A stretch of DNA of 64,000 bases from IMGVR_UViG_3300042923_000569:62001-126000, one strand, 5' to 3'; shown: positions 746-64,000, numbered from the stretch's first letter. Translations and numbers: made by a program. The notes: generated by a model from the letters alone, not told the origin.

Positions 746-1603
746 ATGAATAAGATGAACCCTTTATCAAAGTACACTAAAGTAGAAGTACTTTATACAA
801 AGTTGATAAGTAACAATGTTGTGAAATACAACGAAGGTGTTTTAGTAAATGACACTGTGGAATGTGGCGTTTGTGCACGTTCTGCACGAGATGAATTAAT
901 GTTCAATAACCCTGACGCACTAATGAATGGTGAAGCAGTATCTAGTGTTATTGAGAACTGCGTACCAAATATTGCAGACGCAAGAAAACTTTTTGTTCCA
1001 GATGTTGAACTACTATTGATTGCAATTAAATTAGCAACAAAAGAAACCGAATATCATATTGAAGTAGATTGTCCTGAATGTGGTCATCATGGTGCATTTG
1101 AACGTAACCTACAAGTACTATTAGATAGTGCTGAACTATTAGAAAAGCAACCAGAATTACTATTAGAAGATGTAGGTGGTCTACTTCTTAAATTCAGACC
1201 TCAAACATGGCAGGAATATAATACCTTTGGACAGAATATGTTCCAGCAACAAAAGAAAGCACAGATCCTAGAAAAACGTGATGATTTAACTGATGAACAG
1301 AAAATGGAAGTCTTTAGTCAAATCTTTGAAGAAATGACAAGATTGAGTTTTGATATGATTGTTTGTAATATTGATAGTGTTGAAACTGTAGACGGGAATG
1401 TGATTACTGAGAAGGAATTTATTGCAGAATGGTTGGGTGTACAGCCTTCATTTATTCTCAAACAAATTCGAGAAAAAGCAGATGAAGTCAATAATTGCGG
1501 AGTTTCGCATGAGATGGATGTAGGATGTTCTAAGTGTGATCATGAATGGACAATCGAAAATCTTCAATTTGACCCAAGCAATTTTTTCGTACAAAGCTTC
1601 TAA
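746..1603 (+). CDS. Baseplate hub assembly protein / tail assembly chaperone (T4 gp26-like)
   Basis: ARDELMFNNPDALMNG, D-x-E-LLLIAIK, CPEC and CSKC Zn motifs, C-terminal DPSNFF; GGAG RBS. Confidence 0.75.
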   Translation: MNKMNPLSKYTKVEVLYTKLISNNVVKYNEGVLVNDTVECGVCARSARDELMFNNPDALMNGEAVSSVIENCVPNIADARKLFVPDVELLLIAIKLATKETEYHIEVDCPECGHHGAFERNLQVLLDSAELLEKQPELLLEDVGGLLLKFRPQTWQEYNTFGQNMFQQQKKAQILEKRDDLTDEQKMEVFSQIFEEMTRLSFDMIVCNIDSVETVDGNVITEKEFIAEWLGVQPSFILKQIREKADEVNNCGVSHEMDVGCSKCDHEWTIENLQFDPSNFFVQSF

Positions 1604-1800
1604 TTTCTGAACCGGAAGAAATACGGAAAGAAATAGCAGACCTAAGATTGAACTCGGAAGATATTAAAAGTGGATTGATGGAGGTGTCAGTGTACATAGA
1701 GAACACTACATATGAAACGCTACTGAATATGCCTGTAACCGACAGAGATCTTCTTGTGAAGCAATATAATAAAAAGGTCAAAAAAGAAAATAAGAAATAA
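1582..1800 (+). CDS. -1 frame extension of the gp26-like gene (or a small separate ORF from ATG 1678)
   Basis: -1 frame open from 1573 to TAA 1798-1800 (FRTKLLISEPEEIRKEIADLRLNSEDIKSGLMEVSVYIENTTYETLLNMPVTDRDLLVKQYNKKVKKENKK). Slippery heptamer T TTT TTC at 1582-1588; a terminator follows immediately. Confidence 0.6.
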   Translation, partial: FFRTKLLISEPEEIRKEIADLRLNSEDIKSGLMEVSVYIENTTYETLLNMPVTDRDLLVKQYNKKVKKENKK

Positions 1801-1805
1801 TTAAG

Positions 1806-1830
1806 AACCAGCCATTGTGCTGGTTTTTTT
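1806..1830 (+). terminator. Rho-independent terminator
   Basis: AACCAGC-cattgt-GCTGGTT followed by a T-run, directly after the 1800 stop. Confidence 0.8.
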
Positions 1831-1849
1831 GTATCTAAATTATCTTAAC

Positions 1850-2513
1850 TCTTTAGATTTGCCATTCTTCGAATGTCAAAGAATTTTCGTTGTTCTGTAC
1901 ATCACTAACGTTCTGTACTGAATCAACTCAATTCAGATTTATATCTAATGCATCACTGTTAACGTTACACACTTTATACTGACGAGATTTGTTTCATTTA
2001 TCATCCCCCCACAGGGGAAAGACGTAAAAAAAGCACTTATAAAAGTGCCTAAATTTCTGACGATGATAGTCGTACTTTAATTGTATCGTAAATTTCTATT
2101 TTTCAATAGAACGCAAGCGGGTTGCTCTGTTTCTCGCTATTACGGTCTTATGCAACGGTCGTGGGCTTACCACACTCAGTTTTAAGTCTATACAATCAAA
2201 CTTAAAACCTATCAACTGAAAATGGACGGATTTATATTGTATAAAAACCATCGCATTATTTAACATCAGTTAAATTCCCTTAGCTTTTTGGTAGGGGCGA
2301 TTCCTATATATCTATCGAGGATGTTCTGTCAGCTTAGTGAACATCTTTATAGTGCCGTATTGCCGTGGGTGGTACAAACTATGCCATCTCCTAACGGGTG
2401 TCTTCTGCACTTCGAACTGCTTGAACTTCTCATCTATCCTCTACATTTTCGAGTGAATTAGGTTCTATTTTATCAGTACTTAACAGTACTGCCAAGCAGG
2501 GTTGTATTACTAC
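1850..2513 (-). ncRNA. Candidate large structured non-coding RNA (alternatively an RNA-primed replication origin)
   Basis: No ORF of 60 aa or more in ~790 bp. More than 10 hairpins and long-range stems. Directly downstream of a TGAAACA-N16-TATAAT promoter (2520-2548). Terminator-like hairpin plus U7 at 2050-2026 on the minus strand. Confidence 0.55.
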
Positions 2514-2519
2514 AATCAT

Positions 2520-2548
2520 ATTATACCACAAAAACGTTCACTGTTTCA
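2520..2548 (-). promoter_or_regulatory. Phage promoter TGAAACA-N16-TATAAT (extended -10 TGG)
   Basis: Minus strand reads TGAAACAgtgaacgtttttgtggTATAAT; same architecture as 4 other copies. Confidence 0.75.
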
Positions 2549-61779: not shown

Positions 61780-61782
61780 CGA

Positions 61783-62328
61783 TTACCCCTTTTTACCAAA
61801 GCCAGCAGACATATATTCTGAATAAGGCTTTTTATCTTTTTTATAACTGTCAATTGCATCTTTTACTACAGTATCCGCACGGCCTTGACCACCAAGTTCT
61901 TCAGCATCAACTTCAGGAACTTCTTTATATTCTGGATCAAGTAAACGTGGCTCGTAATCATCGAATTCGATATCATCTTCAGAATCAGCAATTTCTTCCT
62001 GATAAGGTTCTAAGTTATTTCGAACGTGAAGTAGAGCTTCCGACCATTGTAATAGACTTCCGATTTCAAATAAAAGTACTTGTGGCTGAATACCACGCTT
62101 GCATTTAAAATCAAACATCCAAATCTCACCACAGTCAAGATTGTAAAAATCAATTGGGTTAGATTGGAAAATTGTTTTCTTTAAAGGACCAACTTCAAAA
62201 GCGTCATATCGATCAGTAAGTCGTGCTACGACTTTATGTAATTCTTCGGAGCTTGGCTCACACGCAAATTTTACACGATATGAATATTCTGGAGTAAGGT
62301 CGGTTAATATTTTTTGTAATTTATTCAT
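61783..62328 (-). CDS. Hypothetical conserved phage protein
   Basis: Y.YRVK.A, KKT..Q..P.DF motif; 181 aa. Confidence 0.65.
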   Translation of the reverse strand: MNKLQKILTDLTPEYSYRVKFACEPSSEELHKVVARLTDRYDAFEVGPLKKTIFQSNPIDFYNLDCGEIWMFDFKCKRGIQPQVLLFEIGSLLQWSEALLHVRNNLEPYQEEIADSEDDIEFDDYEPRLLDPEYKEVPEVDAEELGGQGRADTVVKDAIDSYKKDKKPYSEYMSAGFGKKG

Positions 62329-62355
62329 GTTAACTCCGAGTCACAGTAATTTAAT

Positions 62356-62919
62356 TTATTTATTACGTTTCATTGATGCAAGTAGCTCGTTGCGGGATTT
62401 TACTGCCACAACCTTCTCACCTTCAATTGCGTTCGGGTCTGTTCCACCTAATGATACTGGTGTTTTGGATTTTTGATTTAATTCGATTTCCATTTTGTCT
62501 TTTTTAATCTGCATATCAATTAACTTAATATCAGAATCGATTACTTTTGAATGTGCGTCTAAGGCAATCTTAAGCATAGCATTTGCAGCATTAATCATTT
62601 CTGATGCAAATCTGTCTTCGCAATTAAAAGCACGGTCAAAAATATCTTCAAATTTATCTTCTGCCATTTTAGCCAAACGGTCTAAATGTGATTTACGACT
62701 TGTAATATCAGGAATGTCTTTCAACTGTTCACGATATTCTTTCAGTTGTTGCATTGAACGTCTAGCTTTATCAACATCAACACCTGATATTTCAGTACTT
62801 TCATCTTCGTCATCATCTGAATATAAGTCGTTCTCGTCATAGTCTTCACCAAGTAGTTTCTGTATATCTTCAGTACTAGCTAGACCTAGTGCTTCTTCAA
62901 CACCACGTTTTACTTTCAT
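62356..62919 (-). CDS. Coiled-coil protein, possibly terminase small subunit
   Basis: Helical LD.LA..A...F...A..ML..AL.A...K.I..Q.KK core and C-terminal SRNELL; next to the gp4-like gene. The function call is tentative. Confidence 0.4.
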   Translation of the reverse strand: MKVKRGVEEALGLASTEDIQKLLGEDYDENDLYSDDDEDESTEISGVDVDKARRSMQQLKEYREQLKDIPDITSRKSHLDRLAKMAEDKFEDIFDRAFNCEDRFASEMINAANAMLKIALDAHSKVIDSDIKLIDMQIKKDKMEIELNQKSKTPVSLGGTDPNAIEGEKVVAVKSRNELLASMKRNK

Positions 62920-62920
62920 A

Positions 62921-63379
62921 TTAGTTCTTCCTATATAATGATTTTTCAGTAATTATTTTAAACTCAATGTTATTTTGCTGACATATCGCCATCGCTGCTG
63001 ACCATTTTGCTTGATTAACAAGTACTGTGATCTTGTCCTTTCTGGATTTAGCAAACTGCATATAACATTGCTTTTCAGGTTTAATTTCTAATAGCTGAAT
63101 TTTTTCTGAACCAGATGCTGGGTCAATGTATTTAACTAAAAAATCAGGCCAGTAATTTTTAATCTTACCCTCCACAGGGCAAGTATATTGTATTGGAAAC
63201 GGTTCAACTGACCATTCCAGTACTGTAGGGTTCATATCAAGTGCAACCATAACATCCTTTTCCCACGAACTTCTATAAATTGGTGGATTTGATGATTGGT
63301 ATTTTTTGATATTCTGTATTGAATACACACCCTGTGCTTGTTTCGTATTCTTTATTTTTGCTGGGTTAAACTTCTGCAT
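62921..63379 (-). CDS. Head completion nuclease (T4 gp4-like, TnsA-type PD-(D/E)xK)
   Basis: YRSSWE, W.VEP..I.Y, YWPDF, LEIKP, N.AKW.AA, F.IITE. Confidence 0.9.
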
Positions 63380-64000
63380 TAAAAATCTCCTAAGATATTA
63401 CCTAAACCAAACTTTGTAGTAGCTGAACTAATAATACTTCCGAAATTAAGTGCATTTGCACCTCTAGTTACAGCACTACCAATATTCCTGATAGTATCTG
63501 GACTAATATTTCCTCGTAGAATATCTCTTACTGAAGTTACAATGTCATATCCTGCTGTTCCGGCACGAATAATCTTACCTACTGTAAGTACTCCAACATT
63601 TTTATCATCTAACTGACCAAAATATTTGTAGAATCCAGATTTACCTAAACCAGTAGTATCAGTAATTAGATTACCAATACCAACAGTAGGTGCACTTATT
63701 GAGTTATATCCATCTGGACCTAAATGCCCGATACCTTCATATTTCAATGAAATTGAAATAACACCAGGGTCACCAGCACTTTCCATTGATTTAGTTTCTA
63801 AATTAATATCTTCGATGAATACGTTAAACATGTTGTGACATGTATATGTATCATTATCAATTTCGTAAATGTTTATTTGTTTGAAAAAGTACTGCTTATC
63901 GGAGTTTCCGTTATTCATAACAGATCTTCCCCAATTACCACCCATTGCTTCAAATTCAATAGGACTACTTAATACATCATTTCTGAATGATGCAGTACTT
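63379..64000 (-). CDS. 3' part of a tail tube-like protein (gp19/gp54 family); start lies beyond the right edge
   Basis: Frame stays open past 63945 to the window end; FFKQINIYE...H.MFN.FI......ISISLKYE tube-fold-like pattern. Confidence 0.5.

Follow-up and report, generated by a model that had tools for sequence, protein, structure and literature searches.

Among described systems, the one most like the subject of this report is HIP1 (GCGATCGC) of the cyanobacteria. HIP1 is a palindrome in genome-wide excess, present in coding sequence (in all reading frames) as well as in non-coding DNA, and more abundant than codon usage accounts for. Its density is conserved across relatives while its sites turn over, and its function is not established. 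It is reportedly associated with CGATCG and GATC methyltransferases, a link said to have been made by Elhai in 2015. The subject here is a second palindrome, AGTACT, in the viral DNA IMGVR_UViG_3300042923_000569:62001-126000. This 64-kb stretch, called the window throughout, comprises bases 62,001-126,000 of one 357,873-bp virus contig with direct terminal repeats, called the genome. AGTACT is HIP1-like in kind, and the cyanobacterial precedent named in a preliminary description of this DNA is apt as description: the word is iterated, exceeds what codon usage gives, and turns over with its density conserved. Unlike HIP1, which belongs to a bacterial phylum, AGTACT is an AT-rich 6-mer of a clade of lytic enterobacterial jumbo phages, no cognate cytosine methyltransferase was found for it, and it is built into a class of promoters. 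AGTACT is a new word in a new setting, that of jumbo phages, and its link to a promoter class adds to the HIP1 picture.

What would hold a palindrome at such density? The reading preferred here, a tentative one that sequence comparison makes quite possible, if short of probable, is that selection keeps AGTACT in place as closely set binding sites for a symmetric protein, specific to the clade, that would bind or modify DNA. Several systems offer partial parallels. The Neisseria DNA uptake sequence (DUS), the Haemophilus uptake signal sequence (USS), and Chi also occur at about 1 per kb or denser, are far commoner in their own genome, are read by a protein that in this way favors the organism's DNA, and affect peptide composition. 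They are, however, words of 8 to 12 nt that are non-palindromic and orientation dependent and have known readers (ComP and RecBCD), whereas AGTACT is a palindromic 6-mer. The phage proteins phi29 p6 and SPO1 TF1 bind the whole phage chromosome, prefer phage DNA, and repress early promoters near genome ends or terminal repeats. The promoters with two AGTACT sites in Pectobacterium phage CBB, a relative described below, are similar in that they lie within terminal repeats. The difference is that p6 responds to bendability and TF1 to hydroxymethyluracil DNA, and a defined hexamer is used by neither. The Dam/GATC and Dcm/Vsr systems resemble the present one in having a palindromic methylation target about once per 250-360 bp, promoter-overlapping sites as possible switches, and a Dam-family enzyme, which the phage clade also has. 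They differ in that in E. coli GATC is no commoner than chance allows, that MutH and Vsr were not found in this genome, and that the word bias of Dcm/Vsr goes with a 5-methylcytosine methyltransferase for the word and markedly depleted donor words, neither of which is seen for AGTACT.

The central observation concerns the following element of the window.

787..63999, no strand assigned: the palindrome AGTACT, 152 copies by exact count, 2.4 per kb.

The window has a G+C content of 36.05%, and the expected number of copies is 21.7 at zero order, 22 under a first-order Markov model (Markov-1), and 40 under a second-order one (Markov-2). By z-score, AGTACT ranks first among all 4,096 hexamers. The first exact site is at 787 and the last at 63994, and 74 of the 152 lie at or before 30516. 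The preliminary description, which called the word strongly over-represented and put about 70 sites in the first ~30.5 kb, was therefore right as to the excess (152 against ~22, the top hexamer) and close as to the count, and the sites do run to the end of the window. All but two fall within genes, on both strands (150 genic, 2 intergenic), and the longest stretch free of the word is 35771-38000. The enrichment is not shared by words built on the same core: among NGTACN counts in the window, AGTACT has 152, AGTACA 31, AGTACC 21, AGTACG 17, and GGTACT 49, with GGTACC and CGTACG at 0.

The same holds for the genome as a whole, where 991 copies were observed against 121 (zero order) or 217 (Markov-2), again the highest-scoring hexamer. 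The density is 2.77 per kb, or 1 per 361 bp, and every 10-kb interval holds between 14 and 57 sites. Could the composition of the encoded proteins explain this? Open reading frame (ORF) calling gave 554 ORFs covering 90% of the genome, and two nulls were applied to them. The synonymous null shuffles codons inside each gene, keeping protein sequence and codon usage. A stricter null, which deliberately absorbs signal, also keeps in-frame counts of each codon plus its next base and holds serine within its codon box. In the coding sequence of the window, 147 sites were found against 41.2±5.8 by synonymous shuffle, with a maximum of 57 in 300 shuffles. For the genome the figures are 869 against 240±12 (3.6-fold, 53 standard deviations [SD]) and, under the stricter null, 869 against 535±15 (22 SD). 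The preliminary description had proposed Markov and amino-acid-preserving nulls as the check, with an observed/expected ratio (O/E) near 1 as the outcome that would speak against enrichment; under none of them does the ratio come near 1. The excess is present in all three codon phases, at 3.2- to 4.4-fold over the synonymous null: AGT-ACT 430 versus 135, xAG-TAC-Txx 135 versus 31, and xxA-GTA-CTx 304 versus 75 (in the window, 96 versus 31.5, 9 versus 1.7, and 42 versus 8.1, respectively). It is strongest in non-coding DNA, with 120 sites versus 11.5 expected, or 10.4-fold. The tRNA genes, with 2 sites in 2.4 kb, are too small a sample to inform.

How specific is the enrichment to this word? 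The two control palindromes named in the preliminary description, TGTACA and ACTAGT, have genome O/E values of 1.03 and 0.58 under the codon null. All 18 words that differ from it by one mismatch lie between 0.67 and 1.75; most are mildly raised, as they would be if an abundant word decays into them. The C-to-T neighbors AGTATT and AATACT are the sole low transition neighbors, at 0.85-0.88 under the synonymous null and 0.97-0.98 at zero order. GTAC outside AGTACT stands at ~1.07 of the codon null, that is, without enrichment. With all 18 near-neighbor words in that range, the unit is the whole hexamer. The enrichment is confirmed as a real, strong, DNA-level property of the full hexamer. It is not a by-product of the purging of GGTACC and CGTACG (0 copies each), which would free at most ~140 sites against an excess of ~870.

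The word has left its imprint on the proteins. Ser-Thr is the most over-represented dipeptide of the proteome (779 versus 506, a ratio of 1.54), while Thr-Ser stands at 1.00, and 55% of Ser-Thr pairs are written AGT-ACT versus 15% expected. Val-Leu and Lys/Gln/Glu-Tyr are raised as well, with the reversed dipeptides (Leu-Val and so on) at ~1.0. Since only the forward dipeptides are raised, causation runs from DNA to protein. The pressure for AGTACT is strong enough to alter proteins and is costly to them.

Is the enrichment confined to this virus? Megablast of the window gave matches at 77-79% identity to Pectobacterium phage CBB, Cronobacter phage GAP32, Serratia phage BF, and Erwinia pEa_SNUABM phages, with more remote matches to Salmonella phage Munch and E. 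coli Asteriusviruses. Judged from its sequence, the genome is that of a RaK2/CBB/GAP32-like enterobacterial jumbo myovirus. The relatives compared were syntenic 41-50-kb pieces of CBB, GAP32, BF, Munch, Ecwhy_1, and EJP2, together with 50 kb of RaK2. AGTACT has an O/E of 4.8-8.7 in all seven and is always the top palindrome; the preliminary description had proposed such a comparison. The excess has been conserved throughout the existence of the clade. In whole records, AGTACT was counted beside TCATGA, a control word of the same composition: 937 versus 142 in RaK2, 1312 versus 159 in EJP2, 1072 versus 152 in BF, and 850 versus 149 in Munch. Outside the clade the relation is inverted, with AGTACT depleted relative to TCATGA in T4 (29 versus 51), Xanthomonas jumbo phage XacN1 (0 versus 127), and E. 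coli K-12 (400 versus 1147). AGTACT is the most host-discriminating hexamer, its density of 0.086 per kb in E. coli K-12 making a 32-fold contrast with the 2.77 per kb of the phage. In the early regions of clade members from IMG/VR, O/E rises to 9-24. The enrichment goes unmentioned in papers on CBB, RaK2, fEgEco12, and Sharanji and in jumbo-phage review papers, and full-text literature searches turned up no report of it for this clade.

Are the sites themselves conserved? Codon alignments were made for 21-30 orthologue pairs per relative, at nucleotide identities of 0.64-0.77. At aligned positions, 45-50% of window sites are retained in CBB, GAP32, and BF and 20-26% in Munch, Ecwhy_1, and EJP2, and yet the total AGTACT count is similar in each relative. 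With at most half of the positions shared and totals similar, it is density that is maintained, not position. At conserved amino acids, ~70% of AGTACT sites are retained versus 30-40% for control hexamers, and the commonest replacement words at orthologous positions are AGTATT and AATACT. Polymorphism was examined in four near-identical metagenome contigs covering window positions 20400-26399; among 40 listed of the 115 variant positions, 1 falls in a site and 0 create one, a check of low power.

The sites are also evenly spread. Coding O/E is 3.3-4.2 in every genome segment, and within genes the sites are evenly distributed from start to stop. Counts in 500-bp bins are under-dispersed, with a variance/mean of 0.81-0.84. 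The largest gap in the genome is 2.2 kb versus 2.7 kb expected, and genes lacking a site number 152 versus 183 expected (47 versus 75 among genes of 300-600 bp). A role as a packaging target, one of the functions suggested in the preliminary description, finds no support in sites so uniformly spread.

The bases around the hexamer carry a further signal. Flanks were scored against a codon-position-matched expectation, with coding sites read on the sense strand. C or A is favored at -1 and G or T at +1, with G at -1 and C at +1 avoided; farther out, T at -4 is matched by A at +4, and A at -9/-8 by T at +8/+9. The pattern was mostly replicated in two separate sets of relatives, the exceptions being +4 A and -8 A, which failed to replicate in CBB/GAP32/BF. 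Such mirror symmetry is unobtainable from codon structure, and an enzyme or a mutational bias limited to the hexamer does not predict it. Dyad-symmetric flanks are what a dimeric protein covering ~24 bp would predict. A correlation between -1 and +1 across the dyad, significant in this genome, was unreplicated in relatives and is probably driven by promoter copies; it was not used.

The word is found in promoters as well. Many intergenic AGTACT sites are pairs 20-21 bp apart in consensus sigma-70 promoters of an early gene cluster (genome 219-237 kb). These take the form aaaAGTACTTGCat-N11-gcgAGTACTtTATAAT, with one AGTACT abutting the -35 box (AGTACTTGC) and the other abutting the -10 box (AGTACTtTATAAT), and in ~12 early promoters the paired sites occupy about -41..-36 and -19..-14. 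Examples of these promoters and a related array are as follows.

G000:C1:229978-230010 and 232056-232088 (outside the window), no strand assigned: dual-AGTACT early promoters.
Genome 239,076-239,141 (L065:3076-3141), no strand assigned: four AGTACT sites spaced exactly 20 bp apart between divergent genes, containing a 14-bp perfect palindrome, TAACAGTACTGTTA.

About 12 matches to the pattern AGTACTTG-N12-13-AGTACT-N-TATAAT lie in this genome's early cluster. Among the relatives, CBB has 14 (7 per terminal repeat), BF 6, Munch 2, Ecwhy_1 4, and RaK2 7, and reversed-pattern controls give 0 matches. The geometry is of the operator type, palindromic sites being paired on one helix face and overlapping the -35 and -10 elements, and the array of four sites looks like an iteron or operator array. 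A putative class of middle-gene promoters (TTTTTGAAACG...TGTGGTATAAT, a -35 variant described for CBB) is without AGTACT.

Two other regions deserve mention beside these promoters. In a family of unrelated uncultured phages (L029:4400-5480, with sister contigs L034, L038, L039, L045, and L063), 8 AGTACT sites are packed into 880 bp of non-coding DNA, in an early or terminal region; the family's G+C content is ~0.42, GCGC is present, and there is a dual-AGTACT consensus promoter together with pairs at 10 and 22 bp. In CBB, 1.2 kb without annotated genes (329406-330631; L073:29407-30632) lies upstream of an HTH_37 regulator and a phage sigma factor and contains strong promoters and GC-rich stretches that resemble structured RNA.

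Which protein could read the word? A Dam-family (PF05869) adenine methyltransferase of 182 residues (L066:1850-2398, minus strand) occurs in 6/6 of the enriched relatives tested and is lacking in T4 and XacN1. The other methyltransferase that drew attention is the following.

G000:C1:313967-314830 (L007:1015-1878), minus strand: a C5 cytosine methyltransferase of 287 residues, whose nearest solved relatives are eukaryotic Dnmt3 catalytic domains.

It is the only C5 methyltransferase of the genome, and its gene is absent from BF and Munch, both of which are enriched in AGTACT and GCGC-free. Bisulfite sequencing of RaK2 DNA reports CpG methylation only (PMC3622015), and the 287-residue enzyme is probably the CpG methylase reported for RaK2. 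Being Dnmt3-like and missing from the enriched BF and Munch, the C5 enzyme was rejected as the cause. No match was found in the genome for Vsr (PF03852), for the PF01555 (N4/N6) and PF02086 methyltransferases, or for MT-A70, although the MT-A70 search was empty in its control genomes too; nor was a MutH-like nickase found there. ScaI-type restriction-modification was set aside for want of a PF01555-class methyltransferase in the genome, no nuclease gene having been sought, and Mom-like modification because the gene, present in RaK2, has no homologue in this genome. DNA of the Asteriusvirus fEgEco12 gave the fragment patterns predicted in silico with all ten restriction enzymes tried (PMC13070987) and so gives no sign of global hypermodification. 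A search for TetR proteins, prompted by a resemblance of the site to the SlmA box GTGAGTACTCAC, returned none in the genome, and the -1 G and +1 C of the SlmA box are the disfavored flanks. The sole Cro/C1-type helix-turn-helix (HTH) protein, an HTH_37 regulator orthologous to CBB_511, was also rejected, a detectable orthologue occurring only in CBB among six enriched relatives. A host regulon was considered as well: the dual-AGTACT promoter has 6 matches in 596 Gb of bacterial genomes, about the number expected by chance, and 0 in Enterobacterales. Finally, the unrelated phage contigs that bear the same promoter might share a binder with the clade, and the only common proteins are a terminase, a MazG-like protein, and a lysozyme, none of them a candidate.

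How might these pieces fit together? In the mechanism that we propose, AGTACT would be kept by selection at high, even density (~1 per 360 bp) across the RaK2/121Q/GAP32/CBB-like jumbo myoviruses, and the hexamer would be the core of a ~20-24-bp dyad-symmetric site, A(-9)..T(-4)..[C/A]AGTACT[G/T]..A(+4)..T(+8/9). Its reader would be a symmetric (dimeric) protein common to the clade, either a DNA-binding or DNA-coating protein or the Dam-family adenine methyltransferase plus a reader of its mark. Given the 32-fold density contrast with E. coli, this reader would act preferentially on phage DNA. Binding might serve to mark or coat that DNA and to switch early promoters, and the two-site arrangement (20-21 bp) would place the same reader on early sigma-70 promoters as a possible switch. 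The sequences themselves show the enrichment and that it does not depend on codon usage, its occurrence throughout the clade, the turnover of positions at conserved density, the symmetric flanks, and the promoter pairs; we infer that a protein reads AGTACT at all, as we do its identity and what its binding would achieve. The preliminary description had suggested a phage DNA-binding protein or methyltransferase as what targets the word. The dyad flanks out to ±9 bp, the early promoter pairs, and the clade-tracking Dam-family enzyme fit that suggestion, and no reader protein was found to complete it. It had also proposed a search for a methyltransferase or DNA-binding protein that tracks the enrichment; within the clade the PF05869 enzyme does so in 6/6 relatives, and neither the C5 enzyme nor the Cro/C1-type HTH does.

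Several points weigh against a carpet of binding sites kept by selection. PF05869 homologues ~44-52% identical are found in four unrelated phages, of Clostridium, Lactococcus, Staphylococcus, and Acinetobacter, in which AGTACT is not in excess, and such homologues outside the clade neither prove nor kill the methyltransferase link. The genome has no TetR, no HU-like protein, and no p6-like gene, and no reader was found among recognized folds; with its orthologue only in CBB, the Cro/C1-type HTH does not track the enrichment. The under-dispersion of sites is modest, at ~2-2.5 standard errors per region. The dual-AGTACT promoter also turns up, as single copies and roughly as often as chance would give, in six bacterial metagenome-assembled genomes and about a dozen contigs from unrelated, uncultured phages, and the paired sites could thus be good sigma-70 promoter sequence and not operators. 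Lastly, sequence alone cannot separate selection for sites from a directional drive of repair or conversion, both of which predict density with turnover.

What else could account for the word? A by-product of codon, codon-pair, or amino acid usage, fed by AGT, ACT, GTA, and TAC codons and by Ser-Thr-rich structural proteins, merits next to no credence. AGT, ACT, and GTA are indeed frequent, and the nulls of 240 and 535 exceed the zero-order 121, but the observed count lies 53 SD or 22 SD above them, all phases are raised, reversed peptides sit at 1.0, and the two nulls with the 10.4-fold non-coding excess exclude such usage as the cause. That AGUACU functions in transcripts, as a nuclease or binding site or by self-pairing, with the palindrome ensuring its presence on either transcribed strand, is extremely improbable. 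The word is present in every mRNA, site-free genes are too few, two copies can pair together, and density peaks in the early region. Against this, the sites that flank -35 boxes lie upstream of predicted transcription start sites, an RNA reader does not predict mirror-symmetric DNA flanks, and with 502/554 called genes on one strand an RNA motif needs no palindrome. The sites might instead serve a type II topoisomerase of the phage T4 type (gp39/gp52 homologues) that would cut A^GTAC^T with a 4-bp stagger and focus decatenation or relaxation of a 350-kb chromosome. The dyad symmetry, the weak preferences over ~24 bp, the flexible central TA step, and the uniform, even sites would suit it, and the clade encodes gp39/gp52 homologues (RaK2 annotation). 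T4, however, has the same enzyme family and is depleted in AGTACT, type II topoisomerases have degenerate preferences and no strict hexamer, and the promoter pairs are left unexplained; we consider a topoisomerase very unlikely.

Two further explanations involve DNA modification. In one, AGTACT would be an epigenetic mark, the target of an orphan Dam-family methyltransferase in a GATC-like role. A palindrome can be in a fully methylated, hemimethylated, or unmethylated state, and virion DNA would thereby be told apart from newly replicated DNA and early promoters switched. This seems unlikely to us, if worth taking seriously. The PF05869 enzyme is in 6/6 enriched relatives and not in T4 or XacN1, the site is palindromic and evenly spaced, its 1 per 361 bp approximates 4-mer density (a 6-mer needs ~10-fold enrichment to reach a GATC-like level), and it overlaps promoter elements as do sites in Dam-controlled promoters. 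However, equally similar homologues reside in phages without enrichment, no MutH-like nickase was found, and a small methyltransferase would not be expected to have flank preferences as wide as ±9 bp. Known members of the Dam-type family are GATC-specific or non-specific, which also counts against it. The other explanation follows the HIP1/very short patch (VSP) repair model, in which modification plus mismatch correction or a conversion bias regenerates a functionless AGTACT. In its favor are the conserved density amid positional turnover and the words AGTATT and AATACT, the sole transition neighbors under expectation (0.85-0.88) and the commonest orthologous replacements. The expected machinery is missing, with Vsr, PF01555, and Mom not found in the genome, the C5 enzyme Dnmt3-like and absent from enriched BF and Munch, and RaK2 methylation at CpG. 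By a rough flux estimate, an 8-fold excess from a single donor should halve the donor words, which actually stand at 0.85-0.98; all six positions contribute about equally; and a drive limited to the hexamer predicts neither symmetric flanks nor under-dispersion. We hold such a drive to be decidedly unlikely, and the methylation-linked repair footprint raised in the preliminary description finds little support.

The excess of AGTACT is set off by what the same genomes avoid. GCGC is absent from the window (0 in 64 kb, 68 expected), from the genome (0 in 358 kb, 363 expected), and from each relative's 41-50-kb piece, while E. coli has ~6.8 per kb. Of the hexamer palindromes with four G/C bases, at least 16 have zero copies (CTGCAG, CAGCTG, GGTACC, CCATGG, GGATCC, CGTACG, and others), as are nearly all of the all-G/C ones. 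The preliminary description had called an enriched palindrome unusual against the general avoidance of such words, and these absences agree. Restriction-site avoidance is thus seen for GCGC and most GC-containing hexamer palindromes, and AGTACT, itself the ScaI/Eco255I site, does the opposite with an 8-fold excess. The absence of GCGC across a clade with many host genera suggests a clade-internal cause or a very broad restriction pressure. One speculation, which we regard as doubtful, is that jumbo phages without a nucleus, and apparently without genome-wide hypermodification, may write self-identity into sequence. AGTACT would be a “self” word for a phage protein and GCGC a “non-self” word for a phage nuclease, and phage enzymes of transcription control, protection, or host-DNA destruction could tell the two chromosomes apart with no need of modified bases. 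That a clade purges most palindromes and yet holds ~1,000 copies of one implies an undiscovered whole-chromosome protein-DNA system. If the reader were identified, it could become clear how large phages that have neither a nucleus shell nor hypermodified bases organize, mark, or protect their DNA and schedule their early promoters, and the clade would then offer a tractable model for HIP1, a problem long unsolved. In practice, ScaI should give ~1,000 fragments of these genomes if AGTACT is unmodified, and AGTACT density with GCGC absence makes a simple metagenome signature for clade members.

Individual sites in the window illustrate the general pattern.

787, in the plus-strand gene 746-1603: site in GAA-GTA-CTT, by reading frame.
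24699, in the plus-strand 10-kb gene 17927-27937: site in CAG-TAC-TGG, by reading frame.
2474..2491, no strand assigned: inverted repeat of 18 nt, CAGTACT-TAAC-AGTACTG, made by sites 2475 and 2485, 10 bp apart.
17927..27937, plus strand: virion structural gene of 10 kb, orthologue of CBB_236 and GAP32_230, with 28 AGTACT sites in all three phases.
41195..41777, plus strand: repeat of a fibre-like structural gene with 8 sites, repeat consensus aAGTACTTCAG.

The sites at 787 and 24699 had been offered as examples of a word found in all three phases and in genes on both strands; both are correct, and non-coding DNA can be added to the list. The only non-coding sites of the window are those at 2475 and 2485, which lie 13 bp past one plus-strand gene and 109 bp ahead of the next. 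They can indeed form the hairpin that had been described, which ViennaRNA folds (complementary-strand reading) into a 7-bp stem with a 4-nt loop, and site pairs at 10-bp spacing recur elsewhere in the genome. The 10-kb structural gene served for the comparative and polymorphism checks. In the fibre-like gene, the sites are spaced by 61, 102, 102, 41, 61, 102, and 108 bp, with a peak of pairwise distances at 102 bp. These eight, inherited with the protein repeat, are non-independent.

One other word of the genome is in excess. The E. coli Chi octamer GCTGGTGG is found 14 and 19 times on the two strands, where ~1-1.5 copies each would be expected. The GGT/CTG-rich codon usage of structural genes probably gives rise to it as a side effect, and ACTGGT, CTGGTG, and TGGTGG are also among the top hexamers.

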